Shown piece after piece: positions 3,001 to 27,675 of a DNA stretch of 64,000 nt. This DNA is from Macrostomum hystrix (Eukaryota > Animalia > Platyhelminthes). A program made the position numbers and the translations under genes. Numbering within the stretch: the first letter of the stretch is position 1; each line of letters starts with the position of its first letter. The stretch is from assembly GCA_950097015.1 (NCBI GenBank), contig CATNEN010000005.1, positions 310,001 to 374,000 on the forward strand, written 5' to 3'. A model generated the notes under the pieces. It searched no databases, was not told the origin of the DNA, and saw only the letters and a list, made by a program, of their open reading frames with translations.

Positions 3001-5908
3001 AAACAGCTCGACGCTGTACTCGCGAGTGTCCGGGCCGGCCTCGCGGAAGGTCAACGCGGCCAGACCGTTGGCGGGCACGAGGACAACGTTTCTGGGACAG
3101 TCGACCACTTCTAAGTTGAAGTTGCGCTCGAATTCAATGTTCACCTTGGTTTTGAAATTGGTTCGCGATCGGAAAGCTGGTTTTAGAGAGGGGATTGAGT
3201 GGCAGACCAGTCTGACGCGTTTGCCTCACGCACCAAAATCCACTAGATGGATTCCGCGGCGAGGCCACATTCACTTGGGACGCAGCCGCGGAGAGAAGGC
3301 TTGGGGGCTTGTCGTGCAATTTGCGCCATTGAGAGCCAACCTCCAAGGCACAGTGAGAGTGTACACTGCCTGACGATGAGAAAGTCAGGGCAGATATACA
3401 CACCAGCGTGTGTACATCGTGTGCCTGCATGTGCCTGCGTACAGTATCTGTGTGCGTGTGTGCTCAGGAGTCAGCGAAATGGGCAGAATTGCCTCCTCGC
3501 TGGCTGCGGGTCTGGTGTCACCATCCTTATCTACCTCTCATCCTTATCTACCTCTCATCCTTATCTACCTCTCATCCTTATCTACCTCGATCTCATCCTT
3601 ATCTACCTCTCATCCTTATCTACCTCTCATCCTTATCTACCTCTCATCCTTATCTACCTCTCATCCTTATCTACCTCTCACCTATTTGGGGCGCAGCCTC
3701 GGAGAGAAGGCTTTGGGGGCTTGTCGTGTAATTTACGCCCTTGAGGGCCAAATCTAAGGCACAGTGATAGTGTAAACTGTCTGACAATGAGAAAGTGTGT
3801 GTGCTGCGTGGTCTACTGTCATCCAATTAGTGTCCACAGTTTTGTAATATTTCCACCGCCCCTAGACAATGCTTCGGATTCGAACCTTGGGCATCTGGTA
3901 GAATTCTATGGCGGTCACCGGTCGCACCAGAAGCTGCCATTCGGCCGATTCCAACGGCAGGTGATCCTGAACAAACACGTCCGCATCAGTCAGGAAGTAC
4001 TCTTCGTTGCATTTGTACAGTTTGCTACCGGAGTTGGCTTTGGCGTCGGCCACCTCGCCGCTGGACTCGTCGATTCGTCGATAATTGCCGTCCGAGAAGT
4101 TGACGACAGCCGTGGAGCCCCAGTGCGCGTCGACTAGGCGCCATTCGCCGCGCATCCAGCAGGCGAACCAGATGCCAGTGGAGCGACACGCGTGACCGAG
4201 CTTGAACTCGATGCCCTTCTTGAAGCCGCGAAGTCGCTTGTAGGGAATCGAACCGGCGCTGTAATTGTAAAGTTTGAGAACGAGCGAATAAAGGAGGAAA
4301 GAATAAATGATTAAAAGTCAAAAGCTTGTAAGAACGTGAGTAATTAGAGGAGAATTAGTCGGGGAGGAGGAGGGGAGGTTGTAGCCTAGTGGTTAGAGCG
4401 TCGGACTCACGACTTGAAGGTCGGGGGTTCGATTCCAGACCCCCAACGTAAGAATTTGTGTCTTTTGCAAGATACATAACTCTGCATTACTTCAGTTCAC
4501 CCAGCTGTTAAATGGGTACCAGTATCACCTGGGGTAAATTAGGGTGGTTGTAGAGTCCCTAGTCCATGGACTCAAGTCCATGGACTCAACAGCCGTACGC
4601 AGCCTTCAAATGAGCCGCGCAATAGCTGCGGCTGTGCTGTCGGCTGCACATCTGGCCCAGCTAGAGGAAAGCGAGTAAGTACTTAGGGGAGAACGAGTGA
4701 GTAATTAGTAGAGAACGAGTGAGTAATTAGTAGAGAACGAGTGAGTAATTAGTAGAGAACGAGTGAGTAATTAGTAGAGAACGAGTGAGTAATTAGTAGA
4801 GAACGAGTGAGTAATTAGTAGAGAACGAGTGAGTAATTAGTAGAGAACGAGTGAGTAATTAGTAGAGAACGAGTGAGTAATTAGTAGAGAACGAGAGAGT
4901 AATTAGTAGAGAACGAGTGAGTAATTAGTAGAGAACGAGTGAGTAATTAGTAGAGAACGAGTGAGTAATTAGTAGAGAACGAGTGAGTAATTAGTAGAGA
5001 ACGAGTGAGTAATAAGGGGAGAACGAGTGAGTAATTAGTAGAGAACGAACGAGTAATTAGTAGAGAACGAGAGAGTAATTAGTAGAGAACGAGTGAGTAA
5101 TTAGTAGAGAACGAGAGAGTAATTAGTAGAGAACGAGTGAGTAATTAGTAGAGAACGAGTGAGTAATTAGTAGAGAACGAGTGAGTAATTAGTAGAGAAC
5201 GAGTGAGTAATTAGTAGAGAACGAGTGAGTAATTAGTAGAGAACGAACGAGTAATTAGGTAAGAACGAGTATTTGGGCACTCGATAAACGACTTAAACAG
5301 GGGCAGATTAATCTCAATCCAATGAATGTCCAAAGCGTCGAAAATTCTCACACTAGCAGCCTTTCAAACACATCGGACTGCATCGAATGGTCTCGCATTT
5401 TGGCCACAATGTCCATCGGGCCGCCTTTCAATGCGCCGGCTGAGTTTTTGCTAATTTTCGCCGGATCCGCGGTGCCAACAAAACAGAAGGCCGCTCTCAG
5501 CTTGTCCAACTCGTCGCGACAGCCTGAGAACAATTGCTCGCCGAATGACTCCCATGACTGTCTGGCTGATGGCAACTGACTCCTGGCCCGCCTGTCGATT
5601 TCGACAAAATCGGCCAAATTGAACAGATCCGATTTGCGACGCCGCGACGGCAGCGGCGCACCGGGCAGTGTCGACTCCTTGGGCGAACGACCGAACTCAA
5701 TCTGTCGTCTAGCCAACCAGTGAAGTGTGGGATAGGTGCCCTGTTTTACAGCCTCAATTAGATCTATCTCAGGCGGATAGCAATGCGACTCTAAAGGTAG
5801 TTCGTCAGTTTCTAGGACATAGTTGTAGGATTTCAGGTGATCAGGAAGCTGCTGCTGGTGGGTCTGCTGATTGGCAGGTTTCTCTTTCACATTTGTTGAA
5901 GATGCCAT
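54..5908 (-). CDS. KY (kyphoscoliosis peptidase)/hillarin-like transglutaminase-fold protein with Ig-like repeats and a charged coiled-coil repeat; multi-exon, continues beyond the left edge
   Basis: Exons about 5352-5908, 3886-4258, 1666-3144 and 54-~1195, with GT/AG junctions (GTGAG donor at 5347-5351, TACAG acceptor at 4259, GTATG donor at 1664, GTGAG donor at 49-53). Spliced FERLLV-AGSIPYKRLRGFKKG...WRLVDAHWGS...NEEYFLTDADVFVQDHLP...WQLL matches the KY pattern FERMCRLAG..GYSKG..WHLVDSTWGS..NEFYFLT..F..DHFP..WQLL. Some internal junctions are approximate. Confidence 0.8.
270..870 (-). repeat. Coding 21-bp minisatellite encoding (EEE[K/N]RKQ)n
   Basis: About 28 units of TCTTCTTCTTGCTTCCG(A/T)TTC inside the open frame 4..1059. 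Confidence 0.95.
1200..1350. repeat. 21-bp intronic tandem repeat (GATGCTTTTAGAAAGTCACGT)
   Basis: About 6 units, each containing CACGTG or a variant. Confidence 0.9.
1763..1776. promoter_or_regulatory. RFX X-box-like motif GTTGCCATAGCAAC inside a coding exon
   Basis: Matches the 14-bp X-box consensus GTHNYY-AT-RRNAAC; sequence match only. Confidence 0.35.
3190..3520 (+). mobile_element. tRNA-headed SINE family 2 copy (further partial copy at 3684-3800)
   Basis: Shares GATTCCGCGGCGAGGCCACA...CTGCCTGACGATGAGAAAG with 29000-29165 (-) and the body with 13500-13725 (+). The 29.1-kb copy shows A-box-like TGGCTGAGCGG and B-box-like GCTCGATTCC. Confidence 0.7.
3523..3680. repeat. 17-bp tandem repeat (ATCCTTATCTACCTCTC)
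   Basis: About 9 units, intronic. Confidence 0.95.
4377..4684 (+). mobile_element. tRNA-headed SINE family 1, near full length
   Basis: Head GGTTGTAGCCTAGTGGTTAGAGCG...GGGTTCGATTCC (A and B boxes), then core TTCAGTTCACCCAGCTG. Other copies at 10819-10925 (+), 15055-15215 (-) and 40660-40862 (-). Confidence 0.85.
4690..5262. repeat. 22-bp minisatellite (GAGAACGAGTGAGTAATTAGTA)
   Basis: About 26 units in an intron of the KY-like gene, directly after the SINE tail. Confidence 0.97.
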
Positions 5909-5984: not shown

Positions 5985-8180
5985 ATAAACATGATCTTAG
6001 ACTGCTAGACATGATCCTAGACTGTTAGACATGATCCTAGACTGCTAGACATGATCCTAGACTGTTAGACATGATCCTAGACTGTTAGACATAATCCTAG
6101 ACTGTTAGACATGATCCTAGACTGCTAGACATGATCCTAGACTGTTAGACATGATCCTAGACTGTTAGACATGATCCTAGACTGCTAGACATGATCCTAG
6201 ACTGTTAGACATGATCCTAGACTGTTAGACATGATTCTAGACTGTTCGACATGATCCTAGACTTTTAGACATGATTCTAGACTGTTAGACATGATCCTAG
6301 ACTGTTAGACATGATCCTAGACTGTTAGACATGATCCTAGACTGTTAGACATGATTCTAGACTGTTCGACATGATCCTAGACTTTTAGACATGATCCTAG
6401 ACTGTTAGACAGAATCCTAGACTGTTCGACATGATCCTAGACTGTTACACATGATTCTAGACTGTTCGACATGATCCTAGACTTTTAGACATGATCCTAG
6501 ACTTTTAGACATGATTCTAGACTGTTAGACATGATCCTAGACTGTTAGACATGATCCTAGACTGTTAGACAAGATCCTGGACTGTTAGACATGATCCTAG
6601 ACTGTTAGACATGATCCTAGACTGTTAGACAAGATCCTGGACTGTTAGACATGATCCTAGACTGTTAGACAAGATCCTGGACTGTTAGACATGATCCTAG
6701 ACTGTTACACATGATTCTAGACTGTTCGACATGATCCTAGACTTTTAGACATGATTCTAGACTGTTAGAAATAATCCTAGACTGTTAGACATGATCCTAG
6801 ACTGTTAGACATGATCCTAGACTGTTAGACATGATCCTAGACTTTTAGACATGATTCTAGACTGTTAGACATGATCCTAGACTGTTAGAAATAATCCTAG
6901 ACTGTTAGACATGATCCTAGACTGTTAGAAATAGTCCTAGACTGTTAGACAAGATCCTGGACTGTTAGACATGATCCTAGACTGTTAGAAATAATCCTAG
7001 ACTGTTAGACATGATCCTAGACTGTTAGAAATAGTCCTAGACTGTTAGACATGATCCTAGACTGTTAGACATGATCCTAGACTGTTAGACAAGATCCTGG
7101 ACTGTTAGACATGATCCTAGACTGTTAGACATGATCCTAGACTGTTAGACATGATCCTAGACTGTTAGACATGATCCTAGACTGTTACACATGATTCTAG
7201 ACTGTTCGACATGATCCTAGACTTTTAGACATGATTCTAGACTGTTAGACATGATCCTAGACTGTTAGAAATAATCCTAGACTGTTAGACATGATCCTAG
7301 ACTGTTAGAAATAGTCCTAGACTGTTAGACATGATCCTAGACTGTTAGACGTGATCCTAGACTGTTAGACATGATCCTAGACTGTTAGACAAGATCCTAG
7401 ACTGTTAGACATGATCCTAGACTGTTAGACAGAATCCTAGACTGTTCGACATGATCCTAGACTGTTACACATGATTCTAGACTGTTCGACATGATCCTAG
7501 ACTTTTAGACATGATTCTAGACTGTTAGACATGATCCTAGACTGTTAGACATGATCCTAGACTGTTAGACATGATCCTAGACTGTTAGACATGATCCTAG
7601 ACTGTTAGACATGATCCTAGACTGTTAGAAATAGTCCTAGACTGTTAGACATGATCCTAGACTGTTAGACATGATCCTAGACTGTTAGAAATAGTCCTAG
7701 ACTGTTAGACATGATCCTAGACTGTTAGACATGATCCTAGACTGTTAGACATGATCCTAGACTGTTAGACATGATCCTAGACTGTTAGAAATAGTCCTAG
7801 ACTGTTAGACATGATCCTAGACTGTTAGACAGAATCCTAGACTGTTCGACATGATCCTAGACTGTTACACATGATTCTAGACTGTTCGACATGATCCTAG
7901 ACTTTTAGACATGATTCTAGACTGTTAGACATGATCCTAGACTGTTAGACATGATCCTAGACTGTTAGAAATAGTCCTAGACTGTTAGACATGATCCTAG
8001 ACTGTTAGACATGATCCTAGACTATTAGAAATAGTCCTAGACTGTTAGACATGATCCTAGACTGTTAGACATGATCCTAGACTGTTAGACATGATCCTAG
8101 ACTGTTAGACATGATCCTAGACTGTTAGACAGAATCCTAGACTGTTAGACATGATCCTAGACTGTTACACATGATCCTAA
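5985..8180. repeat. 20-bp satellite (ACTGTTAGACATGATCCTAG)
   Basis: About 110 units with recurring variant blocks. Confidence 0.98.
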
Positions 8181-8807
8181 ACTGTTTTACCTATATAAAA
8201 CGTATTGCAGTCTTTAAAGTTGCTGATTATCAAGTAGGAATTCAGACTAAACGGATTAATCTTGTTCCTCATTAGTTATCCTCTCCGACTAGAATTTATA
8301 TTTGACTATCATCTAAAAACTTTGTCATATGTCAATCAAAATAGCCTCGACAAAAAATGCTGGAAAGATTATTGAACTGCCTCCTTAATTAATCTATAGT
8401 CCTGTGAGTGCCACTGTAAACTGTTTACCTACCCAGACTCATAAAAAATATGAAAATATTAGTTTTTAACATACCCTCATGCAGGTTAGTCCATGGACTA
8501 ATTGAGTTGCTAACTAGCTGCTACAGGCAGGTAGATGCTTTCTGTGTAAAGTTAAATTTGCAATTATTAAGCTCAAAACGCGGGTGAGCACTGTCAAATA
8601 TTCTATCCGTTGTCTCTCCCCAAAAATTGCTTCTATAGAAGCAGTTTATTTATAAGGTCCACGCTATTCTACCCCACCCAAAACTACAGCCAATCTCGGA
8701 TCCCAAATCCCAAACCCATCTTGCTAGAGAGGCCATTGTTCCTACTAATTCTATTCAAATTCTGCTTCTCTAGAATGTGCCGGGGTGGTAAGAAGGGCTT
8801 TGTCACT

Positions 8808-12793: not shown

Positions 12794-13342
12794 CTATTTT
12801 ACAGAGCGCAGCCTCCACAGGCCGTCATTCAAACAGTGCACAGTCTCAATTCCTACGCCCTTATTCTTGCTGGCAATGTCTTCAGCGCTCATCGAAGTCA
12901 GGCCGACAGCCAAGGCGTGCTGCTTGCCTTCGGCCATGACTGCGACAACAGTGCCAGCCGGAACCTGGGCTAGCCGACCTCCTGGCGTGGTCAGGCCTGG
13001 ACACATCACATTGGACCCGTTGAGTAGGAATTTAATCGCTCCCTTGTCGGCTTGCATATGCGGCAGCATAAACGGATAGCGATGCAACAGTTTCAAGCTG
13101 GGATAAAGTGGAGAGTCGCGCTGCTTGAAGAACAGAACCTCGCCAGCCGGATTGGCATAGAGCTCGATGTGCTCGTGACACTTCACAACGCTAAGAGTCT
13201 CCTTCTTGGGTAGGATCTGATCAACGTACTCCGCACAGCCGGGATACTGGGATAGGATGGTGTTGCGAATGGCCTTCTGCACACTGTTCTTAGCATTGTT
13301 CACCGAGGAAATGTTCTCTTTTTCTTCGAATTTGCGAAACAT
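12794..13342 (-). CDS. MCTS1: Malignant T-cell amplified sequence 1 (MCT-1, PUA-domain translation re-initiation factor), intronless, 182 aa
   Basis: MFRKFEEKEN...KCHEHIE...YPSLKLLHRYPF...DKGAIKF...GSNVMCPGLT...MAEGKQHALAVG...NKGVGIE...LNDGLW aligns end to end with human MCTS1. AATAAA (minus) at 12739-12744. TTTTTTTAG acceptor upstream at 13421. Confidence 0.97.
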   Translation of the reverse strand: MFRKFEEKENISSVNNAKNSVQKAIRNTILSQYPGCAEYVDQILPKKETLSVVKCHEHIELYANPAGEVLFFKQRDSPLYPSLKLLHRYPFMLPHMQADKGAIKFLLNGSNVMCPGLTTPGGRLAQVPAGTVVAVMAEGKQHALAVGLTSMSAEDIASKNKGVGIETVHCLNDGLWRLRSVK

Positions 13343-13499
13343 GACGGCAGATTGGGGCTGCAATTTGTAACGACTCAAATACTGACTGTGCAATGTAGCA
13401 GTTGTTAATTTAGCATCCGTCTAAAAAAACAAAGCTCGAAACAGAAATTAGAAAATACTAAGTGGTTAGATAAAGAATTGTCGACCATTACAGTACACG

Positions 13500-13725
13500 A
13501 GTCTGAGCTCGATTCCGCATTAATTAATCTGGCATGCAGCCGCGGAGAGACGGCTGACAAGGGGCTCGTCGTGCAATTAACGTCATTCAGAGCCAACTTT
13601 TAAGGCATAGTTAGTGTACACTGCCTGACGAGGAGAAAGCGTGTGCCTGCGTACGGTATCTGTGTGCTCAGGAGTCAGCGAAATGTGCAAAATTGCTTTC
13701 TTGCTGACTGCGGGTCTAGTGTCAC
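13500..13725 (+). mobile_element. SINE family 2 copy
   Basis: Colinear similarity to 3240-3520. Confidence 0.7.
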
Positions 13726-14238
13726 CAAATAGTGTGTTACTTCCTGCAAACCTGAAACCACTATTATTTTATAACTAATGACCAAACTACTAAGTCCATG
13801 AGCTAACTAAAACATACAAAGAAAATACAAAGATAACAATTAACTTGCTTAACAATTTAGAAATTGGAAAACTGCATAACACAAAAGTTTACGACAACTC
13901 AAAGACAGATTTATTGTTATAAATAAAATCGTTAAGCATATAATACTGCTAAAATGTGATGATCACTTCGGGTGCAGTAAAATTGAACGTCAATACAAAA
14001 ATGTAGCAAAGGCTATAAAAATGCCATGTCAAAATTTTAAATAAAGTCAGAGACAGTTAAAATGCAGTCCTTGTGACAAATCGACTCAAGCAGGCACTTG
14101 GAGGCCAGCAGGCGAGACTAGAAGTAGATTCTGGAATAAAAGTGCCAGGTAAAATTGTTTTTCGATAAACGATTAATGAAACTTGTAAGTTACAAATTAA
14201 ATATGATAGTGTACATAATCGTTCACATCTAGCTGCCA

Positions 14239-14316
14239 TCAGAGAGAAGATTAGACGCCATTCATAGTCTATTGATATTAGACTCATATGGTTGATCCAT
14301 ATAAATATGTCATCAT
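14239..14316 (-). ncRNA. SNORD7: Box C/D snoRNA, mgU6-47-like (U6 Am47); D' guide complementary to the 18S 5' end (U8)
   Basis: C ATGATGA, D CTGA. D guide CTAATCTTCTCT is perfectly complementary to U6 A43-G54; the fifth nt from D falls on A47. D' guide GGATCAACCA + ATGA. Symbol reflects guide-level homology. Confidence 0.9.
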
Positions 14317-14361
14317 TTTGAGCTTACAAAACATGCGACTATGGAAGAAATAAAACACTAG

Positions 14362-14433
14362 TCAGAGATAATTAAAACCATTCATAATGTCTTGTAGACT
14401 CATATGGTTGATCCAAAAAAGCAGTCTCATCAT
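14362..14433 (-). ncRNA. Box C/D snoRNA, paralogue keeping only the 18S-U8 D' guide
   Basis: C/D boxes; 19-nt identity TGGATCAACCATATGAGTC with 14239-14316; U6 guide lost. Confidence 0.85.
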
Positions 14434-14641
14434 TAAATATAGCTAACAAATAATTATTGGTAAGCAGCTGTAAAGTATAGGACAAATTTTCTTACCTTAA
14501 ACGCAAAGATGACGCACAACCGTGACAAAAGCAATCAGGCATTAGCGGACGTCTGAAAATTTGAATGAAATAATGTAATCAGCGCATTCAAAGGTAAAAA
14601 AGAGCAAGTATAAAATAATATGAACTTAAGAACATTATATA

Positions 14642-14722
14642 TCAGATAGGGGCGTTTTTCCACAATTGCTTGTCTATTATTACAGAGCAAGGCGTCAGAA
14701 AGACTAATCAATAAATCATCCT
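14642..14722 (-). ncRNA. SNORD80: Box C/D snoRNA, U80/snR60-like D guide (28S Gm1612 human / Gm908 yeast) plus D' guide to AAAGACTAATC
   Basis: C AGGATGA, D' CTGA, D CTGA. Guides CGCCCCTAT and GATTAGTCTTT are complementary to 28S ATAGGGGCG and AAAGACTAATC. Confidence 0.85.
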
Positions 14723-14923
14723 GTTTTCGAAGGGTATAACAAACACCTAACGTGTGCAAAATAGTGAAAAATGACATACCTTCATAGAACAATGCCAACG
14801 ATTAGAAATCTCGACCTCCTCGAGCAAATGAACGCGTCTAAAACAGGACAGATCAGAATATTTAAAAGATATAAGCGATTAGTGCTATATGAAAATAAAT
14901 ATTATAAAATTTAAGCATTTCTA

Positions 14924-15000
14924 TCAGGTAGAGCTAATAACTAGTCCGCATTTACACGATTTAGTGAATCGGACAAGAGGTGTCAAAATTGTATCATCAT
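14924..15000 (-). ncRNA. SNORD44: Box C/D snoRNA, U44-like (18S Am166) plus D' guide to 28S CAAGAGGTGTCA (yeast Gm2791 equivalent)
   Basis: C ATGATGA; D guide TATTAGCTCTA + CTGA; D' CCGA preceded by TGACACCTCTTG. Confidence 0.88.
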
Positions 15001-15054
15001 TATATATTATTAAAGTACATTAAATTGTCACTAATATAAAATAATTACACCTGC

Positions 15055-15215
15055 CCTAATTAGGCCAGATGTGCAGCTAACAGCACAGCCGTAGCTATTG
15101 CGCGGCTTATCTGAAGGCTGCATACAGCGGTTCAGTCCATGGACTGGAGGGACGCCACACCCACTCTCAAATACCCCATAGCTGGGTCAACTGAAGCAAT
15201 GAAGATTTATTTAAT
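15055..15215 (-). mobile_element. SINE family 1 3' part inserted in the snoRNA host gene
   Basis: Reverse complement of the 4480-4660 body. Confidence 0.8.
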
Positions 15216-15517
15216 TGTCTTGCTAAACCACAAGGCTACAACCGCCTCTAACCACAAGGCTGCAACCGCCTCTAAGGATCGTAAGTATCCCTAAGTTTGG
15301 TTTAAAAGCGCAGCTGTGTGAAATATCAGTTTTATTGTTTGCTTAATAAAAATTAAGCATAGGTACAATTAAGTTAACTTACATACGATGGAATAATTCA
15401 TTGATTCTTTTGAAGCTGAGGCCTTGAAAATTCTGCAAAAATAGCGGGAAAGTTTGTTATAAAAAACTAAAAAACCTATTGGATAGATGGTTTCTGTTGG
15501 ACTAATGTATATTGCAA

Positions 15518-15577
15518 TCAGATTCGGGAAATTGTTCAATCAAATTATTTATCATCGTAGGTAAGAGAAGTCATCAC
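15518..15577 (-). ncRNA. Box C/D snoRNA, D' guide to 28S GTAGGTAAGGGAAGTC
   Basis: C GTGATGA, D' ATGA, D CTGA. Guide pairs 16 nt with one G-U. Short TTCGGGA match at D (U50/Gm2863-like, weak). Confidence 0.8.
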
Positions 15578-15768
15578 AATTATTAATCCGAATATATTCA
15601 CTAAATAGTTACTATTTATAGTAGAAATTTCAGCTATAACTTACTTTAAGTGAGCTCGATACTGATGACTACCAGGAATCTGAAGGAGTTATATATATAT
15701 TTATTAAAAATAATAACTTATAGTAGGACATGAATCCTAACAAAAGCAAACTATTATTTTTTTTGCGA

Positions 15769-15842
15769 TCAGAGCGCTGTAGTGCAATATCAGTTCCGTT
15801 TAATTGGATCACAGAAAGGTAAGCTTGACAGTTTCTCATCAT
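15769..15842 (-). ncRNA. SNORD48: Box C/D snoRNA, U48-like D guide (28S Cm1868) with unassigned D' guide
   Basis: C ATGATGA. D element CACTACAGCGCT-CTGA vs human U48 CACCGCAGCGCT-CTGA as I recall it. Paralogue at 18641-18715. Confidence 0.8.
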
Positions 15843-15990
15843 GAATATACATGGTTTACCTGTTTAAAAAAACGACTGAACCTGCCTAAACTACAACATG
15901 GCATAGTACATGTGGAGTACTTGTAAAAAGACAAAGTAGTAGACTAGTTCTTTACGAATAAAATATGCTAGCTTTCTAATAGAGTTGAAT

Positions 15991-16054
15991 TCAGCTGCCA
16001 AAGTTTAATTTCACGCTTTATCAAACAGCATGACGGTGTAAATAGGATCATCAT
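15991..16054 (-). ncRNA. Box C/D snoRNA family F copy 1 (D' guide ACACCGTCATGCTGT, near-complementary to 28S ACAGCAGGACGGTG)
   Basis: C/D boxes; guide identical in three paralogues. Confidence 0.8.
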
Positions 16055-16262
16055 GGATTCAATCTTTAGAAGCTAACTAACAATTAAAGTTAAAAAGGAA
16101 TATAAAACAAATTACCGTGGCCTACCTCAATCAGCTGGTGTTAACGTTCAGTTAGATGTCACTAAGTTGGCCCTTCGTGTTCTAAAACGAAAAGAAGGTT
16201 TACGGATCTAAAATTTTTGTCCGGATTTTAATACTTAAACGGTTTAACTAATTAAATCTACT

Positions 16263-16327
16263 TCAGATGGTGATGCATGGAAGATATATATCATTGTTAT
16301 CAAATGCAAAAGGTGATATCTCATCAT
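16263..16327 (-). ncRNA. SNORD33: Box C/D snoRNA, U33/snR55-like (18S Um1326)
   Basis: D guide CATGCATCACCAT-CTGA vs human U33 CATGCACTACCAT-CTGA; C ATGATGA. Confidence 0.88.
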
Positions 16328-16539
16328 ACTAAATCCCTTTTCTCAATTGTTGCTATGTTAAAAATTTTTAGTATATAATTTTTGCAAATAAGAAAACAAA
16401 ATTAGATTTTTTATGTTACCTTTGAAAGACATTTAGGACGTGTTTTTTTAGGCACCTGAAAAAATAATTTAAGAAAAATCTGGTAAAAACAAAGCGGATT
16501 TTTAATAACGTTAATAGAAGCTTATAAAATACGCTGAAA

Positions 16540-16605
16540 TCAGTTGAAGAAATTTAATCCGCATTTTTGTAAATTGGACAAAGGGTGTCAAATTTTTATC
16601 ATCAT
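16540..16605 (-). ncRNA. Diverged U44-like paralogue
   Basis: C/D boxes intact; TCCGCATT and GGACAA..GGTGTCAAA shared with 14924-15000; D guide degenerate. Confidence 0.7.
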
Positions 16606-16709
16606 GTTACAACTATTAGTCGCATTGTATGAAATCTATAGTGCTATTCTTGGCCTATAACTGAGATCTCTGGTTACTGCTATGCTATTTCTTGCAGTTA
16701 AATTGCAGT

Positions 16710-16771
16710 TCAGAACCCAGTGCTATCATCACCGAAAGTCAGGTCAAAGTGAAGATATTGAGTATCATCAT
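16710..16771 (-). ncRNA. Double-guide box C/D snoRNA: D to 28S Cm3680 (SNORD88/snR76 site), D' to Am3697 (U37 site)
   Basis: C ATGATGA, D' CTGA, C' GTGATGA, D CTGA. Guides complementary to CCCAGTGCT and GTCAAAGTGAAGA. Confidence 0.9.
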
Positions 16772-16825
16772 AATACGCAATGGTTATCGAAGTCTAATAT
16801 ACACCTCTAGAAAAGAATTAACACT

Positions 16826-16983
16826 GCATGTGAGCCACGCTCATCAGAAGCTGATATTAGGCAATAAAATTGAATAAAACAACTTCTGGATTTTAAGTGG
16901 ATCGGAAGAGCTTCCTAATCTAGCGACTAAATGAATCAGTCACCAATATACCTTAGTCGGTGATTGAAACGAGAAAGTCGCAA
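16826..16983 (-). ncRNA. Box H/ACA snoRNA; 5' pocket fits 28S Psi3801 (human ACA54/SNORA54 site)
   Basis: Hairpin 1 (16923-16981). H box AGATTA at 16916-16921, 14 nt from the pocket. Hairpin 2, then ACA at 16829-16831. Pocket strands pair with GAAUGGA-U-N-AACGAGA. Confidence 0.75.
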
Positions 16984-17162
16984 GCAATCGTGGGCAAATT
17001 TGAGATAAGTTTAACATAATTGTTACTCACTTTTAAAATTACCGACAGATATCCTTTCTCCGAATTGAACACTGGATAGTAACTGAAATGTCAATTTAAA
17101 GGCATCTTAGTATTGATAGCAAATCATTGATACTCTATTTGAGATGTTTTGGCACTTAAGAG

Positions 17163-17229
17163 TCAGATGGTGATGCATGAAAAAAAGATATATCATAGGT
17201 TCTCGAACAAGCAGGTGTTGTATCATCAC
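17163..17229 (-). ncRNA. Box C/D snoRNA, U33-like copy 2
   Basis: Same D guide; C GTGATGA. Confidence 0.85.
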
Positions 17230-17406
17230 ACTATTGTATTATGAAACTAAAATATTATATAAAGCAATTTACCTTTATAGAATCCCCTTAGATCACTAGC
17301 ACTTGGTTGCTTCACCAACCTGAAGAAGTTTACATGAACAAAATTGCTTGAGCTTGTAGCGAAAAAAAAACAAAATAAAATTTTATAATTTAAAAACAAA
17401 AACTAA

Positions 17407-17485
17407 TCAGGAATAAATATTTTGTTCATACTGTAGCACACTTGGCGCCAGAGATCATATGAACTATGCTAATTAAATTCATCAT
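17407..17485 (-). ncRNA. Box C/D snoRNA, U77-like D' guide (28S Am1521 human / Am817 yeast)
   Basis: C ATGATGA; guide GCATAGTTCA + D' ATGA, complementary to TGAACTATGC; D CTGA. Confidence 0.82.
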
Positions 17486-17703
17486 AAAATATATTACAAA
17501 ATAAAAGCATAGACAAAAATTACAAATATAATTTCGATTAGGATAAATAAGAAAGCAAGAAACTTACAGAATGAAATGAGATCACTAGGTAATTTGGAGG
17601 TAGAAGGAGCAAACCAAAAAGTAGCTGAAAGAATGGTGCAATTGTTATTAGAACTTTAATAATGGTCTATTAATTCTAATCTAAAAATCTAAACTGGTAA
17701 TGA

Positions 17704-17766
17704 TCAGAGTATTATTAATTTACAATCACATTCATATCATAGTAGGTAAGGAAAAGAATTCATCAC
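17704..17766 (-). ncRNA. Box C/D snoRNA, paralogue of 15518-15577
   Basis: TCAT-N-GTAGGTAAGG register conserved; C GTGATGA. Confidence 0.78.
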
Positions 17767-17977
17767 GTCACTGAACTATTAAAAACGGCTGTAGTAATAC
17801 ATATGTACTTACACATGTAATTCCTTGCCACCTCAGCCAGAATCATCTGCCTCGGACACCACAACATTCAAAAGGTCCATACGACTAGGACTATGTAACT
17901 GCAAAATAAAAGACCGATGTTAATGAGTGACAAAGAACAAAAGAACAAACAGTTGTGCGATAAAAATACGGATAAGC

Positions 17978-18065
17978 TCAGGTAGCAAATATCTCTTCAA
18001 GATTTTAGGGCGTCGAAATGTGCACAAATGCACACTCGACTTCCGACGGTAATTCCAATCATCAT
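17978..18065 (-). ncRNA. Double-guide box C/D snoRNA: D to 28S Cm2352 (U24 site), D' to 18S Um627 (SNORD65/snR77 site)
   Basis: Guides complementary to GTAGCAAATAT and CGGTAATTCCA; D' CGGA; C ATGATGA. Confidence 0.88.
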
Positions 18066-18134
18066 TGTGAATAACAAAAATATAATTACTAGACAACAAA
18101 TAGTTTTGCATAAATTAGCAACATGTCCAAAGCA

Positions 18135-18224
18135 TCAGCGGCCAATTTTTCATTGACGCGAGTAGTTTTACTGCATGGCGATATCATTTTTCAGAGTCGC
18201 TAAGCCAGGGATAACAATCATCAT
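18135..18224 (-). ncRNA. Box C/D snoRNA, snR38-like D' guide (28S Gm4362 human / Gm2815 yeast); possible D guide to the C2836 equivalent
   Basis: C ATGATGA; GTTATCCCTG + CTTA complementary to CAGGGATAAC; D guide matches CGGCCAA (7 nt only). Confidence 0.78.
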
Positions 18225-18305
18225 GTACTTTATTGCGGACGTGTGCTAAAACAAATTTAAGTTAAAAGTTGTACTAAACATAAAAACTACAAGTGTCTAT
18301 CCATC

Positions 18306-18369
18306 TCAGCTGCCATATGGTTCTTATCATGTGTGTCTAACAGCATGACGGTGTAATTAGGATCATCAT
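18306..18369 (-). ncRNA. Box C/D snoRNA family F copy 2
   Basis: C/D boxes and conserved guide. Confidence 0.8.
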
Positions 18370-18640
18370 TTAGATGGAACACTTAAGTCTTAGGAGTTAA
18401 TGAGCATTGGAAACAACACAATTTAAATTTCAAACGATTTAAGAAAAAATTTAACCTACCTACTAATATTGGCAAAACTGGCTTCTTGAGCCTGAGCCAA
18501 ATCTACTACTACTTTAAGTAGTCAGTCAGAAATCCACGTGAATTGTCGAATCTCAAGTCTAGAAAATTTGAAACGAAGTTCAAAATTTTGTTAAGAAACA
18601 TTTAAGGAGTCAATTTGATATTAATAAATGATACAAGACA

Positions 18641-18715
18641 TCAGAGCGCTGTAGTGACTTATCACATCCCTAATTAGGATCACAGAAAGGTAAGCTAGAA
18701 CGTAATAATCATCAT
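18641..18715 (-). ncRNA. Box C/D snoRNA, U48-like copy 2
   Basis: Both guides identical to 15769-15842. Confidence 0.82.
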
Positions 18716-18757
18716 GCAATTAGATAATACTTCAACTACAAGGAGTATGATTTGGGC

Positions 18758-18840
18758 TCAGACAGCAAATTATCTTCAGTGTTAGACTTTGATGTGCACA
18801 GTTGCGCACAACAAATTCCGACGGTAATTCCAATCATCAT
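18758..18840 (-). ncRNA. Box C/D snoRNA, paralogue of 17978-18065 (18S Um627 guide intact, Cm2352 guide degenerate)
   Basis: TCCGACGGTAATTCCAATCATCAT identical to the other copy. Confidence 0.82.
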
Positions 18841-18990
18841 AGCCCAAAACAAATTTGAAGGATTCACTGCAGGGGAAGGAAAAAAGAGGGTAAGAAATGA
18901 AATGACAGATAAGTGATAAGACTATTAGTACTTTAAATACGAACAAAGTCTTAATTTGAGAAAAAAAACCTAAGCTTGCATGCATCCATT

Positions 18991-19054
18991 TCAGCTGCCA
19001 TTAAATTAAAATCATGTGTTTCATACAGCATGACGGTGTAAAATTAATCATCAT
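18991..19054 (-). ncRNA. Box C/D snoRNA family F copy 3
   Basis: C/D boxes and conserved guide. Confidence 0.8.
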
Positions 19055-19344
19055 TTAATGGAGCATAGCGAAGCAAAATTAGTTGATAGACTACAAAATA
19101 AGAAAATAGTAAAGGAGGTCGGAAGCAAATTTAAACGGACGAAAATCATTAATTAACTGCAAAAAATATAATTACACAATGAGCGCAAAAATTTACCTTA
19201 TTTGCTTCTTTGGAATTGCTTAAACTCTTCTGTGTGCTTCAGCTAGTCTGTTTTCTGGAGTCTAAAACGGTTATTAAATAGGTCGCTTGTAATATTGAGG
19301 AGAAATTTAACTTGCCAGTTTTTAGTTTATATACTCTTGCGCAA

Positions 19345-19412
19345 TCAGATGGTGATGCATGAAAAAAGATTTGTCATAACAAAACTCTAACTATAGGTGA
19401 TTTTATCATCAT
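19345..19412 (-). ncRNA. Box C/D snoRNA, U33-like copy 3
   Basis: Same D guide; C ATGATGA. Confidence 0.85.
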
Positions 19413-19600
19413 TGTTTGTTAAATAGGACATTACATTTATATAACAGTAAATAAAGGCATAGAATACTACTTACCAGTATAATCATGTACTCCGAGCGAA
19501 AAGTTTTTCTGAAATTTGTGAGAATAAATAAATATAACCAATTTGTGTTAGATGTTAACGGTAAAACCAAGCACTTGTATTCTTCGATATAAAAATGCCA

Positions 19601-19674
19601 TCAGATAGGGGCGTTTGTCTACACAGAGCACTAATAAGCACACATAAGAAAGACTAATCATACAAGTTCATCAT
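19601..19674 (-). ncRNA. Box C/D snoRNA, U80-like copy 2
   Basis: Both guides as in 14642-14722; D' CTTA. Confidence 0.85.
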
Positions 19675-19907
19675 TAGGAACTAAAGTTTTGGCTCTACTT
19701 TGTTAAGTACAAAGAATTAGGTCGACAGTACTAAACTAGTTTAAAAACAGTGATAACAATTTAAACATACTTACACTTTTAAAGCATGTTTTAATTCCTC
19801 GACTTAGCTAGTTATAAGGCATCTAAAATAAAATAATGAGATTTATTAATTAAAGAAAACAATATCAGTGGTTGAATGGACCTTACTTTAAATATTTAGA
19901 ACACATA

Positions 19908-19980
19908 TCAGGAAGAGCTAATAGTCCGCATGAATAAATGCTAAACAATTATTTGGACTAGAACAATGTTTTAACATCAT
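19908..19980 (-). ncRNA. U44-like paralogue (18S Am166 guide intact, C box ATGATGT)
   Basis: TATTAGCTCT guide + CTGA; D' guide degenerate. Confidence 0.72.
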
Positions 19981-20069
19981 TCTGGGCATTTAACTTAAAT
20001 TAAGTCAACTATTTTCTAACCTGTCGATTAAATTTCAGATATACAAAATACAGTTTGAGGCAACAGTTT

Positions 20070-20133
20070 TCAGAACCCAGTGCTACAATCATAAAATATC
20101 AGATCAAAGTGAAGAATGTTTGGATATCATCAC
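20070..20133 (-). ncRNA. Box C/D snoRNA, paralogue of 16710-16771
   Basis: Both guides conserved; C GTGATGA. Confidence 0.88.
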
Positions 20134-20483
20134 AAAATGTGCCTCATTTTGAATTCAATTACACTAAAATTAAATAATAACAAACTACTGTTTATAAATG
20201 TAAACACAAAAATGAAGGCTAACATAGTAATACAACTACTATTAAGATCTAATGACTAACATATTGCACAAAATTAATACAATTGAGTATAGGTAGAGTA
20301 CTTCAGAACCGAATTTTACATCCAAGCTGCTCTGTTTCAAAAGCATGTGCCCAGTACTGCCCTCAATATTTTAGATCCAAAGTACAAACTTGAAGTATAA
20401 AAATGGAGCTTCTTATAAGTACAAATAATTGTAGGATCATTTGGATATTGAAGCAGCAAAAAGGTGACACATTTTGGGAAGAT

Positions 20484-20577
20484 CCAGAGCCAAGTGTTTA
20501 CAACAGAGCAACAAAAAAATATGTAGCTCTGAGCATAACACTATAATAGCTTGCTCAGAGAATGGATTGTTCATCAT
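20484..20577 (-). ncRNA. Candidate degenerate box C/D snoRNA against the 28S A-loop region (GCCAAGTGTT / TGGATTGTTC)
   Basis: C ATGATGA and D' CTGA present; D is CTGG; both guides sit one nt off the +5 register. Confidence 0.45.
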
Positions 20578-20805
20578 ATCACTCTGTTTAAATATCGCAT
20601 ATGATCTATTAAAAACGAAGATGTCAAAATGTCATTTGACGATGTCGAACAAATTATAAAGCTACTTACCAACTAGATTGCTGTATAGATAGTAGGATTT
20701 TGCTATTGTGATATCGGCAAGGCGATGGCTTCTAAAATGGTTTAGGTGCTATACACTATTTTTTATTATAAAAATTAAAAAACTACAAAAGCCAGACATC
20801 TTTAA

Positions 20806-20877
20806 TCAGATGTATATATAGTATCCACAGTGGCATGAAAATGCAAATCAGACATATGCTTGTCAGTTATTCATCAC
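20806..20877 (-). ncRNA. SNORD27: Box C/D snoRNA, U27/snR74-like (18S Am27)
   Basis: C GTGATGA; GACAAGCATATG + D' CTGA, complementary to CATATGCTTGTC; D CTGA. Confidence 0.9.
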
Positions 20878-21070
20878 AAAAAATTAATATCAGAAGGTAT
20901 TGTTTAATATAGATAAAATAATAGAGAACTTACAATTTGTGATTCTCATGTGAATCTAGATATAGCACACTGAAGCAAACTGGCTGTTTCCTGCAGTTAA
21001 ATGGGTTTAATATAAAATTTATGCATTGAGCACGCTGAATAACAAAAACTAGTTTGTGTTTTGAAAGGTA

Positions 21071-21146
21071 TCAGATATCGTTTCAATTTTGACATTCACA
21101 GCTTAGCTCAAAAAGAACAGGCTCAAAACACGTTGGGTAACATCAT
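21071..21146 (-). ncRNA. Candidate orphan box C/D snoRNA
   Basis: C ATGATGT, D CTGA, size and orientation like its neighbours; no target recognised. Confidence 0.35.
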
Positions 21147-21737
21147 AAAGAGACAAAGCAGCTTAATATCCAACAATTATATTATAAATTCAGTTTCATA
21201 GATAATCACTATAGATAATCACTATCAACAATAATTACTTAACAAAACTTTGTAACTTAAAAGCAACCGCTTTACTTTTAATTACATGGTGTTACCCTAA
21301 AATAGTTTTGAGTGATACTTTACTATTCTAATGTGAAAATGGCATTATTTGGTCAAAACCTACTATACAACATGTTTTTACTAGTTTAAATGAGTACAAT
21401 TGTACAACTATATGTTTTGTGTTGTTAGAAACAGTTTTTCTAAAAAAGGGGGATTTAATTATTGATTTTATTTGTTTAAATTCTTATTTAATGCTGTACA
21501 CATCCAGCATATAAAGTTGTGCAATATAATTATATAAATTATTTGTCTTATATTGTATACTACTTTCTACTTATATTTATGGCTTTTTATTAAATCTTGG
21601 ATTTAATATTAAATATTGGAGCCGAAAAATGATATAAAAAGTTTTTACAGCTTTTTTGAATTGTTTTCTATGCAACTAACATTTTTTAGAGACCAGTTTC
21701 TGTATTGAACTTTTTTAAAGAAAAAGTATAGTTTAGC

Positions 21738-21995
21738 GCATAGTCAAAGCCTGAAATGAGGTTATTTAAACAGTGCGGAAAAAACCGCATAATTCACTGC
21801 ATAGTCAAAGCCTGAAATGAGGTTATTTAAACAGTGCGGTAAATTCCGCATAGTTCACCGCATAGTCAAAGCCTGCAATGATCGAGGTTATTTAAACACT
21901 GTGGTTTTTTAGATGTTATAAACAGTGCGGAAAAAACCGCTAACTTTACCGCAGGGTTATGTGTTGACATTACTATGCGGTAAAGTTAGCGGTTT
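21738..21995. repeat. Three ~61-bp tandem units followed by an 18-bp inverted repeat (possible Helitron/MITE-like relic)
   Basis: GCATAGTCAAAGCCTG at about 21738, 21799 and 21860; ACCGCTAACTTTACCGCA / TGCGGTAAAGTTAGCGGT. Confidence 0.6.
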
Positions 21996-23774
21996 TTACC
22001 GCGCAGTAAAATGTTGCCAACGTGGTCACATAGTTCTAAAAAGTCTTGGTCAGTCTTTTTTCTCTTAAACTAGGTAATAGTGCCTAATTCAGTAGAAGGG
22101 GGCACCAAAGCTATTCTTGGGGTATTGACGGTGCCACAAAAATTTTTCAAGTTGGCTTTCAAATAGAGCTGCACTTGTACCATGCATTTGACACAGCTTG
22201 GCGTTGGCGATCTGCAAAATCTTCAGCTACAGAATTTCTGTGTTTTAGCTTCCTGTTCCCACATATTTGCCAGATTTAGCTATTGACATAGATTAAAGTG
22301 TCAAGTCACGCCAAAACCATGTCAGCACAAATTTTTCAAACTCAGAATGCACGTGTGGCACGAATACAAACAAAAAAATAATATAACAAACAAAAGTAGA
22401 ACATTGCCCAAATGTCATTTGTATACTACTCTATAGATATCAGTCTTAATTCTATTCCATTATGCAGTTATCAATCATACTTTTATCTTATTCACTATAT
22501 TTAATCCAATTTATCACACCATTTTGCACATTGGCCAGTCCTATTCTTTTGTCTTCAATGACACCCATATAGAACAATTAGCATAATAGGCCTAGTGTGT
22601 GGATAAGCATGGGAGAATGAGTTCAAAACATCGTAGTTACCTTTATAAACACTATTTAGGCCCTATTGCTTTTCTTCCTTTATAAACAAGGGCAAGGCCC
22701 AGAACACTACAAGTCTTACACCATCTGAGTGGGGTCTGTGAATACAACAAACACCTTTATCCTCATGGTTACACTAACTTCACTAAGTGGTACACTGCTT
22801 CTACTCGCACTTCTAAAGCGCATAGCTAACATTTTGAAGCACTTGTGCATAAGCTTTTAGGTTTTCTATCATTCAAATAATAAAAAATGGAGCCAGACAT
22901 ATTCGAACACTCTGCATAGAACACCGTAGTTGGTTCTTAGTTAACTTAGATCTTAGGTCTTTTACTTTGGTTCTTAGGTGACAGATCCTTAGTGGACAAT
23001 GTGAGAAGAAGCTGAAGAATTATAGGGTGTGCAAAATATAAGGCATGTTTTAAAAGCGCTTGACATAAAATCTGAACAAGTTATCGCCAAATCTAAGGAC
23101 AAGGTGTCTAAAAATATTATTCACTTACCAGGTCCATTAAGTGCAGTCAGCGAGCATCAGTGATGCAGCTTTTCAAAAACAAAATCATAGATATGCAAAA
23201 AAAACTTTACAGAGCTGACTATCAGCCCCCATCTAGGAGATCGGCGTGAATTTATCGTGAAACGCTATGACGATGACGAAGGGCAGCGGAGCGTAGAGGA
23301 GAGCGCAGAGTGCAGCGCCTTTTACTTAAATTAGCGCAGATTTCTGGTCAAACCACTGCATTCGATTAACTTAAACAAAAATTTACAATTTTTCATGTTA
23401 TTAAATGATTTATTTGTCACTGTACTTTTTTACAAACTAAGTATATTTATTTAAAACTTACAAAAATAAAATTAATCTTTTGACAAAGTATTATGTTCGT
23501 TTTTTCACACTGTCCTATAAATTAATAAGTATCAGCCTTTTTTCGATTTGCTGCGATGAAGCCAAACGAACTTGGCTTCTATATTACTATATATAGTTTA
23601 TAAAAATTGATTTCATTCAAACCAAATTTTTCAAATACCTCCATAACTTACCAAAATATGCCAGTAACAGTAAATTGCTATTAGAACTAATATTTCACCC
23701 ATTTCAAGACAAATATCCAAATATTTCCTGTTCTATTGGCTAAAAATTAGACATAATAAACTCAACTATACTAC

Positions 23775-25715: not shown

Positions 25716-26384
25716 TGTTGGGTTGGGTTGTTGGGTTGAAAGATAAAAAACGCTAGGGTGTTAGTTGCGCATTTCACGTGACCAATCAGATCAGATCACA
25801 ACAAATCTAATCCATTATAAAGCTACTGCAAGGACCCTAATAACATGGACCCAATCACTGACAAGTCGCAGCCAATTGTGGCCATTCACGACATGAAGAA
25901 AAGTGGAGCAATAAACTTTTTAACTATCTTTCTGTACTTTTATTTAAGCGCGCATACACAATCACGTAAAAGTACACACAACAGCTTGATGTATTACTTC
26001 ATGCAGTGTGTGCGAAATAAAATCATTGATTTGTACTTGTTTCTACGCGTGATGGCTTGTACTTTCCAGACATACATTTTTTAGATATTACAGTCAAATG
26101 TGGGTATCAAACTAAGTCGTTTTAAAATAATTCAGTCCAGCTGAAAAGCCCTTTAAAAATTACATTTCGTGATTGAGACAAAGTTGACATGCAATGTGCA
26201 ATTTTAAACACTTCCAGCTTCGATTAAAGAATAACTGACCTATTTAAACCGTCGTAATTATAAAACTCGTTTTCAATTTCGAAAATTTCGGAGTGATCAT
26301 AGATAAAACATGACAAAATCACAAGTTGCCTAATTTTGTGTGAATAATGATCAGAAAAAATGGGAGAAGGCAGACGGAATCAGC

Positions 26385-27675
26385 AGGAGGATGGGATCAC
26401 GAGGTGGATGGGATCAGGAAGAAGATGGGATCAGGAGGAAAATAGGATCAGGAGGAAAATAGGATCAGAAGGAAGATGGGATCAGGAGGAAAATGGGATC
26501 AGGAGGAAGAGGGGATCAGGAGTAAGATGGGATCAGGAGGAAGATGGGATCAGGAGGAAGATGGGACCATGAGGAAGATGGGATCAGGAGGAAGATGGGA
26601 TCAGGAGGAAGATGGGATCAGGAGGAAGATGGGATCAGGAGGAAGATGGGATCAGGAGGAAAATAGGATCAGGAAGAAGATGGGATCAGGAGGAATATGG
26701 GATCAGGAGGAAGATGGGATGAGGAGGAAGATGGGATCAGGAGGAAGATGGGATCAGGAGGAAAATAGGATCAGGAAGAAGATGGGATCAGGAGGAATAT
26801 GGGATCAGGAGGAATATGGGATCAGGAGGAAGATGGGATCAGGAGGAAAATGGGATCAGGAGGAAGATGGGATCAGGAGGAAGATGGGATCAGGAGGAAG
26901 ATGGGATCAGGAGGAAAATAGTATCAGGAAGAAGATGGGATCAGGAGGAATATGGGATCAGGAGGAAAATGGGATCAGGAGGAAGATGGGATCAGGAGGA
27001 AAATGGGATCAGGAGGAAGATGGGATCAGGAGGAAAATGGGATCAGGAGGAAAATAGGATCAGGAAGAAGATGGGATCAGGAGGAAGATGGGATCAGGAC
27101 GAAAATAGGATCAGGAGGAAGATGGGATCAGGAAAAAAATAGGATCAGGAGGAAAATAGGATCAGGAGGAAGATGGGATCAGGACGAAAATAGGATCATG
27201 AGGAAAATGGGATCAGGAGGAAAATGGGATCAGGAGGAAAATAGGATCAGGAAGAAGATGGGATCAGGAGGAATATGGGATCAGGAGGAAAATGGGATCA
27301 GGAGGAAGATGGGATCAGGAGGAAAATGGGATCAGGAGGAAGATGGGATCAGGAGGAAAATGGGATCAGGAGGAAGATGGGATCAGGAGGAAGATGGGAT
27401 CAGGAGGAAGATGGGATCAGGAGGAAAATAGGATCAGGAGGAATATGGGATCAGGAGGAAAATAGGATCAGCAGGAAAATGGGATCAGGAGGAAGATGGG
27501 ATCAGGACGAAAATAGGATCAGGAGGAAAATGGGATCAGGAGGAGGATGGGATCAGGAACGAGATGGGATCAGGAGGAAGATTCGATCAGAAGGAAGATG
27601 AAACCAAGAGGAAAATGGGATCAGGAGGACGATGGGACCAAGACGAAGATGGGATCAGGAGGAAGATGGGAAGAT
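26385..27675. repeat. 17-bp purine-rich minisatellite (ATGGGATCAGGAGGAAG)
   Basis: About 75 units. Confidence 0.97.

Follow-up and report, generated by a model that had tools for sequence, protein, structure and literature searches.

What does the AT-rich DNA (30-34% G+C) between 13.9 and 21.2 kb of a 64,000-nucleotide stretch of the Macrostomum hystrix genome (contig CATNEN010000005.1, positions 310,001 to 374,000; this whole stretch is called the window below) encode? A sequence-only reading had proposed that the minus strand hides a non-coding host gene, probably of a flatworm, with 24 box C/D small nucleolar RNAs (snoRNAs) and one H/ACA RNA lying between short exons. Splicing, the lack of a recognisable open reading frame (ORF), a snoRNA in each intron, and guides in register with ribosomal RNA (rRNA) and U6 all agree with that proposal, and because of them we regard the minus strand from ~23315 to ~13890 as very probably an RNA polymerase II-transcribed, spliced, non-coding snoRNA host gene of Macrostomum, of the UHG/GAS5/Drosophila Uhg type. 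Its introns in all likelihood contain the useful products: 24-25 predicted box C/D snoRNAs of ~13 families, together with one possible H/ACA RNA. The gene type is already known from flies and vertebrates, and the locus is a large further example of it.

The spliced host transcript

Four RNA runs of one organism contain 23-28% of the sampled words of the region, and RNA contigs from these runs are at least 99% identical to the window. The contigs reveal one spliced transcript. At its 13 joints the skipped segments are bounded by CT..AC as written on the plus strand, or GT..AG on the minus strand, and word depth is 38-65 at spliced joints compared with 2-12 in contigs of unspliced introns. The short GT-AG exons that had been read between the snoRNAs are therefore present in spliced RNA, and the exon at 17813-17898, picked out earlier for having stops in all three frames, was recovered exact to the base.

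A loose contig end of 155-186 nt beyond 20991 maps to 23130-23159, which places exon 1 of the model at 23315-23129 and makes the first intron 2.1 kb long. The host gene lies where it had been placed (13900-21150), with a start ~2.2 kb further upstream than claimed. Hosts of this type have a 5′-terminal oligopyrimidine start and a short-lived spliced RNA; here the longest contig begins CUGCAC, although its first 45 nt, in exon 1, are 76% pyrimidine. No E-box (CACGTG) occurs within ~400 nt of the apparent gene start. At the other end, a 255-nt loose end below 15383 opens with an exon at 14837 and is long enough to take in exon 17. The gene model spans ~9.4 kb and comprises 18 exons (34-241 nt) and 17 GT-AG introns:

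13890-23315, minus, whole host gene (joints, loose ends, gene model and ORF scan)
23129-23315, minus, exon 1, at least 187 nt (loose end at 20991)
20934-20990, minus, exon 2 (RNA joints)
20670-20731, minus, exon 3 (RNA joints)
19775-19822, minus, exon 4 (RNA joints)
19475-19508, minus, exon 5 (RNA joints)
19197-19261, minus, exon 6 (RNA joints)
18460-18558, minus, exon 7 (RNA joints)
17813-17898, minus, exon 8, stops in all three frames (RNA joints, exact)
17568-17624, minus, exon 9 (RNA joint, cut +2, and gene model)
17273-17319, minus, exon 10 (RNA joints and gene model)
17031-17082, minus, exon 11 (RNA joint, cut +3, and gene model)
16420-16455, minus, exon 12 (RNA joints and gene model)
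16126-16181, minus, exon 13 (RNA joints)
15645-15679, minus, exon 14 (RNA joints)
15383-15432, minus, exon 15 (RNA joints)
14780-14837, minus, exon 16 (start from the loose end at 15383; end predicted from a GTATGT donor)
14496-14552, minus, predicted exon 17 (splice motifs)
13890-14130, minus, predicted exon 18, 241 nt (splice motifs; AATAAA at 13915-13910)

The spliced RNA, ~1.33 kb long, is non-coding, with a longest ATG-initiated ORF of 39 codons and at least 26 stops in each frame.

Predicted snoRNAs and their placement in the introns

Box C/D snoRNAs have a C box (RUGAUGA) near the 5′ end, a D box (CUGA) near the 3′ end, and a length of 60-100 nt. Between 13900 and 21200 the pattern TGATGA-N49-79-CTGA is found 22 times on the minus strand and never on the plus strand, whereas dinucleotide shuffles gave a mean of 0.45 and a maximum of 3 (n = 300). 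The minus strand of the window has 24 RTGATGA motifs, all of them within 12-24 kb. Two further units have a one-mismatch C box, AUGAUGU (19980-19908) and AGGAUGA (14722-14642), and the 24 minus-strand box pairs claimed between 14239 and 20877 are accounted for as 22 exact pairs plus these two. A window-wide count of the motif (203 against 26 expected) proved unusable; a 30-nt satellite at 41.9-60.8 kb contains CUGAUGA...CUGA, and the count was therefore restricted to the host region and strand.

A 25th, weaker unit is at 21146-21071. One of the two weaker candidates mentioned earlier may be 20550-20590 (minus strand, intron 3), where an AUGAUGA has a CUGA 13 nt further on and a hairpin but lacks a terminal D box over 115 nt; this is possibly a decayed snoRNA.

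Predicted unit lengths are 60-90 nt. A simple scan gave terminal stems of 5-7 bp for five RNAs and of 1-3 bp for the rest; the terminal stems of intronic snoRNAs are often weak. The predicted units are as follows, with target sites numbered as in the reference locus L001 described in the next section:

21071-21146, minus, weak C/D candidate, intron 1, C box AUGAUGU (D box 80 nt upstream of the 3′ splice site; single rRNA pairing, rich in G-U)
20806-20877, minus, SNORD27-like (D′ pairs 12/12 with 18S, predicted site A28)
20070-20133, minus, SNORD37/88-like (D′ to 28S A2185, D to C2168; 36.2 bits, E 0.0003)
19908-19980, minus, C/D, C box AUGAUGU (D guide to 18S A162, a U44-type site)
19601-19674, minus, U80-like (D to 28S G893, D′ to A902)
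19345-19412, minus, SNORD33-like (D to 18S U1272; 34.9 bits)
18991-19054, minus, family A (D′, 14 bp with one mismatch, to 28S C1210)
18758-18840, minus, C/D (D′ to 18S U580; D guide weaker)
18641-18715, minus, family B (D guide CACUACAGCGCU, 10 bp with the GGCGC*UG site of L045 28S)
18306-18369, minus, family A paralogue (family alignment)
18135-18224, minus, C/D (5′ guide GUUAUCCCUG pairs 10/10 with 28S at G2782)
17978-18065, minus, C/D (D′ to 18S U580; D, 12 bp, to 28S C1434)
17704-17766, minus, family C (D′, 14-15 bp with the 28S G1877 region)
17407-17485, minus, snR60/U77-like (D′, 12 bp, to 28S A802; 31.6 bits)
17163-17229, minus, SNORD33-like paralogue (guide pairing and Rfam alignment)
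16710-16771, minus, SNORD37/88-like paralogue (guide pairing and Rfam, 33.5 bits)
16540-16605, minus, C/D (D, 10/10, to 28S A2191, 6 nt after A2185)
16263-16327, minus, SNORD33-like paralogue (guide pairing and Rfam alignment)
15991-16054, minus, family A paralogue (family alignment)
15769-15842, minus, family B paralogue (family alignment)
15518-15577, minus, family C (D′, 17 bp, 15 Watson-Crick and 2 G-U, with 28S in L060)
14924-15000, minus, C/D whose halves match two different paralogues (D, 11/11, to 18S A162)
14642-14722, minus, U80-like paralogue, C box AGGAUGA (28S G893 by D and A902 by D′)
14362-14433, minus, tandem duplicate of the U6 guide unit, D guide degenerate (keeps the 18S 5′-end element)
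14239-14316, minus, U6 guide C/D (D guide CUAAUCUUCUCU antisense to U6 ACAGAGA; D′ 10/10 with 18S nt 5-14)
16826-16981, minus, H/ACA candidate, intron 11 (two pocketed hairpins; H box AGAUUA, of the form ANANNA; ACA placed 3 nt before the putative 3′ end)

All 25 C/D candidates are intronic, and none of the 17 introns lacks one. Measured from the 3′ splice site, the D box of an intron's final unit ends 74-108 nt upstream, and 74-92 nt upstream in 16 of the 17 introns; for mammalian intronic box C/D snoRNAs such a distance (~70-80 nt) reflects coupling of snoRNP assembly to splicing. Eleven introns contain one snoRNA and six (introns 3, 6, 7, 11, 13 and 17) contain two or three, so that fourteen snoRNAs share six introns, separated by spacers of 43-151 nt. 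These multi-snoRNA introns break the one-per-intron rule that predominates in animals (PMC11028025). In one minor contig exon 6 is joined to another acceptor, 18867/18866, which falls between snoRNAs one and two of intron 6 (a 9-nt loose end at 18868 in run X2, depth 3.3), and alternative splicing may isolate some snoRNAs in an intron of their own. Spacers of 43 and 46 nt cannot hold an exon, and the pairs that they separate therefore need another route.

By analogy with the known pathway, fibrillarin, Nop56, Nop58 and Snu13 would assemble on the C/D motifs during splicing, an assembly favoured by the fixed distance of ~80 nt from the 3′ splice site. After excision the intron would undergo debranching and exonucleolytic trimming until only the protected snoRNP is left; this snoRNP would 2′-O-methylate the nucleotide opposite guide position five, counted upstream from D or D′. 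For snoRNAs that share an intron, separation would take an extra endonucleolytic cut, as in plants or yeast, or an alternative splice.

The H/ACA RNA of the sequence-only reading has a well-formed structure, with pockets 14 and 13 nt from the boxes and a fold z of -3.1, the lower stem of the 3′ hairpin being paired by hand rather than taken from the minimum-free-energy fold. No bipartite target conserved across the four reference rDNAs was found for it, and no Rfam H/ACA family matched at E up to 10; 16981-16826 remains a structural H/ACA candidate only. Scans of introns 1, 3 and 15 yielded no further convincing H/ACA candidate.

Two other elements lie within introns. The AT-rich intron 15 contains a ~270-nt GC-rich insert (15060-15330, minus strand) with a 25-nt tandem duplication, TTAGAGGCGGTTGYAGCCTTGTGGT; it has depth zero in all four RNA runs and no Rfam match. 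Intron 1 contains a 61-nt tandem repeat of 2.6 copies and an adjoining long, perfect-looking palindrome (21737-22010 together; palindrome 21920-22009). The palindrome gives sub-threshold matches to microRNA families on both strands and is probably a foldback element resembling a miniature inverted-repeat transposable element (MITE) rather than a microRNA.

Guide targets, Rfam families and paralogues

Targets were sought in the ribosomal DNA (rDNA) of four diverged eukaryotes, fetched as metagenome contigs through the conserved 3′ end of 18S. The complete 18S, 5.8S and 28S of the four reference loci were verified with Rfam, and site numbers are those of locus L001. Duplexes had at least 10 bp (at least nine of them Watson-Crick), ended 0-2 nt before a CUGA-like box, had a Watson-Crick pair at the fifth position and were conserved in at least three of the four rDNAs. 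On this basis 17 of the 25 RNAs yielded 21 guide-target duplexes in all; with the internal sequence shuffled (n = 100) the mean was 1.55 and the highest count 6. At 11 bp there were 13 duplexes against 0.42 in shuffles. This register-constrained search replaced an unconstrained search for snoRNA-rRNA complementarity, which separated poorly from shuffles (19 versus 2-10).

The methylation targets claimed from sequence are largely borne out by the constrained pairing. Predicted sites in 18S are A28 (20877 D′ guide), A162 (19980 and 15000 D guides), U580 (18840 and 18065 D′ guides) and U1272 (D guides of the three SNORD33-like copies). In 28S they are A802 (17485 D′ guide), G893 and A902 (D and D′ guides of 19674 and 14722), C1210 (the three copies of family A, 14 bp including one mismatch), C1434 (18065 D guide), G1877 (family C, up to 17 bp), C2168 and A2185 (20133 and 16771), A2191 (16605 D guide), G2758 (15000 D′ guide, 16 bp with GCAAG*AGGUGUC) and G2782 (18224). 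Human site numbers were derived from spacing and Rfam family alignments rather than from a human reference. The 91 nt between A802 and G893 presumably equal the spacing of human A1521/G1612 and yeast A817/G908, and the 17 nt between C2168 and A2185 that of human C3680/A3697. We likewise take A28 to be human A27, and U580, U1272, A802 and C1434 to be sites of the human U627, U1326, A1521 and C2352 types.

Located directly before CUGA, the D guide of 14316-14239, CUAAUCUUCUCU, is identical over 12 nt to published antisense probes for human and rice U6 (PMC6239192, PMC9905475), which were used instead of a U6 reference after a scan of viral contigs found none. The fifth position of this guide pairs with the last A of U6 ACAGAGA. 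We take this A to be A47 in human numbering. Both tandem copies at 14239-14433 have a 10-nt element beside an AUGA box that is fully complementary to 18S nt 5-14, with U8 as the predicted site. To our knowledge, 18S U8 and 28S A902, C1210 and G1877 are not methylated in yeast or human.

Two assignments were revised. The family A D′ guide had been matched to the human C1868 site and was rejected for it, its pairing lying ~85 nt downstream of GGCGC*UG in all four references; the family B D guide fits better at the C1868-type site. In 19980-19908, the CGGA of AUGCGGA was rejected as a D′ box, as the motif occupies the C′ position in three paralogues. It is now read as a degenerate C′ box, and the assignment of 28S A2283 was dropped.

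Sub-threshold Rfam C/D matches, obtained in E-value mode, align exactly on the boxes and guides. Two copies match SNORD37 (36.2 and 33.5 bits, threshold 45), three match SNORD33 (~35 bits, best 34.9, threshold 44), and single RNAs match snR60/Z15 (31.6 bits, threshold 41) and SNORD27 (29.2 bits, threshold 52). As with SNORD37, SNORD33/32/Z195, snR60/Z15 and SNORD27, the predicted sites are at the corresponding conserved rRNA positions. Unlike in the Rfam families, the second guide often differs; one example is a SNORD37-like RNA with a SNORD88-type D guide. With the same guides, these RNAs would work like SNORD37, SNORD33, snR60 and SNORD27, and they are not members of those families by the Rfam criterion.

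Nine of the ~13 families have two or three diverged copies. In global alignments of paralogues the AT-rich flanks alone give a background of 56-66% identity, so that only the block pattern is informative: within most families the boxes and at least one guide are identical, and internal spacers and 70-nt flanks are at background. Guides and boxes kept while spacers and flanks diverged argue for old duplications with selection on the guides of each copy. Some units appear to be mosaics or to have lost a part. The unit at 15000-14924 joins the 5′ half of 16605-16540 to the 3′ half of 19980-19908, the three SNORD33-like copies combine a common D guide with three different 5′ halves, and 14433-14362 keeps the 18S 5′-end element of 14316-14239 and has lost the U6 guide.

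Alternative readings, related systems and neighbouring sequence

Several points weigh against a host gene of the extent and content described. Running Rfam had been suggested as a check, and the sub-threshold alignments on the guides are its positive side; at gathering thresholds there was no match in the whole window. Pairing was judged on four other eukaryotes and on published probes rather than on the worm's own rRNA and U6, and some guides are without a conserved target. Apart from the start of exon 16, exons 16-18 and the 3′ end come from prediction, based on strong splice motifs and the AATAAA at 13915-13910. Degenerate-looking sequence is also present, in 14433-14362, 21146-21071 and the D guide of 18840-18758.

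The last of these points bears on whether the locus could be largely a graveyard, with one working copy per family and the others decaying as pseudogenes from segmental duplication. The two or three copies in nine families would be expected from such a history, as would the loss of a guide in some of them (14433-14362 compared with 14316-14239; the D guide of 18840-18758 compared with that of 18065-17978) or a mismatched C box. We consider it unlikely: the conserved boxes and guides between diverged spacers in most paralogue pairs indicate selection on each copy, and in every intron a snoRNA still sits at the canonical spacing from the 3′ splice site. Still harder to sustain is the idea that the spliced RNA acts through a micropeptide or a long non-coding RNA function of its own, with the snoRNAs as passengers. 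The RNA is stable enough to assemble at depth 38-65 and contains ORFs of 19-39 codons, but the longest is preceded by several ATGs and opens 583 nt from the RNA start, with at least 26 stops in every frame, and exons down to 33-36 nt look like spacers between introns; we give this idea almost no weight.

A different reading concerns the gene next door. Immediately downstream of the host gene, and on its strand, is an intronless MCTS1-like gene (Pre-PUA and PUA domains; 12794-13342, minus), and the snoRNA exons could be its long 5′ leader or the upstream cistron of an operon, in which case the host would be a protein-coding translation-factor gene. Genes for translation are typical snoRNA hosts, the MCTS1-like gene begins ~550 nt past the predicted poly(A) signal, there is a good acceptor at 13421, and the 456-nt spacer (13430-13885) has 39-54% of its sampled words in the RNA runs. 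However, the AATAAA at 13915-13910 closes a 241-nt terminal exon, the GC-rich stretch of the spacer might just as well represent the MCTS1-like gene's own promoter and its non-coding first exon, and 17 introns in a 5′ leader would be highly unusual. The RNA contigs showed no joint between the host and the MCTS1-like gene, though reads were not aligned over that stretch. A shared transcript is quite improbable in our view; the host and the MCTS1-like gene are more likely two separate genes, given the poly(A) signal and, downstream of it, the GC-rich segment that may be the promoter and first exon of the latter.

The closest counterparts of the snoRNA host are the Uhg genes of Drosophila. Uhg1 contains 16 snoRNAs (PMC4430873), and seven Uhg long non-coding RNAs host 42% of the remaining C/D snoRNAs of the fly (PMC11014333). 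Like Drosophila Uhg1-5, 7 and 8, the flatworm gene is multi-exonic, without a recognisable ORF and with intronic C/D snoRNAs; the fly genes often contain several isoforms of a single snoRNA. It differs from them in its ~25 snoRNAs, in having two or three per intron in six of 17 introns, and in showing neither sequence similarity nor synteny. Vertebrate hosts mostly carry one snoRNA per intron (PMC11028025). With vertebrate GAS5, SNHG1 (UHG) and other SNHG genes the locus shares a spliced, non-coding RNA and guides of the U44 and U77/U80 (GAS5) and U27 (SNHG1) types. Vertebrate SNHG hosts are polyadenylated, and their snoRNAs stand ~70-80 nt upstream of the 3′ splice site. We take the human hosts of the guides grouped here to be GAS5, SNHG1, RPL13A (U33), RPL7A (U24/U36), EEF2 (U37) and the hosts of U48 and U6-47. 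Unlike in vertebrates, guides of at least six human hosts are thus found in one flatworm gene, which argues that the grouping is not conserved and that the organisation arose independently.

The polycistronic clusters of plants and yeast, including intronic ones in plants, resemble the locus in having several snoRNAs per precursor segment with short spacers (43-151 nt here). They are mostly independent units released by an RNase III-type cut, whereas the flatworm snoRNAs are inside the introns of a spliced host, and the last member in each intron keeps the animal-type distance to the 3′ splice site. We entertain, as a tentative possibility, that the locus is an animal "super-host" that mixes two biogenesis modes and adds swapping of guide halves and sites without known methylation in yeast or human.

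A full-text literature search found no description of Macrostomum snoRNAs or their host genes, and none of the papers it listed links snoRNA host genes with flatworms. The locus does not overturn current understanding; it provides a near-complete, RNA-supported model of one gene predicted to supply a large share of the rRNA-methylation guides of a flatworm, together with its U6 A47 guide, and indicates a repeated origin of the non-coding host with multiple snoRNAs, this time with a different guide set. The animal is a regeneration and stem-cell model, and the locus would be a single target for knock-down or deletion in studies of ribosome modification, an approach already taken with Drosophila Uhg1. 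Whether animals separate intronic snoRNAs by endonucleolytic cuts could be tested in its multi-snoRNA introns.

Elsewhere in the window, other features are less closely tied to the host gene. At 13430-13885, upstream of the MCTS1-like gene, 15% of the words occur in an RNA run from 2024 that belongs to a second organism (B); this suggests a closely related strain or species with sequence data. A 517-codon ORF at 1591-3144 (minus strand) has a KY-like immunoglobulin-like domain (Pfam PF23265, E 9e-12). The satellite mentioned above is a 19-kb tandem array at 41887-60827 (plus strand) of ~630 copies of the 30-nt unit TGGGAGAATGAGAACTTTAATCTGAGGATC; it has a strong G-over-C skew and yields long spurious ORFs as well as false C/D motif matches. 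Many other minisatellites with units of 17-33 nt are present in the window, e.g., at 5989-8186, 26368-27671 and 35398-38094.

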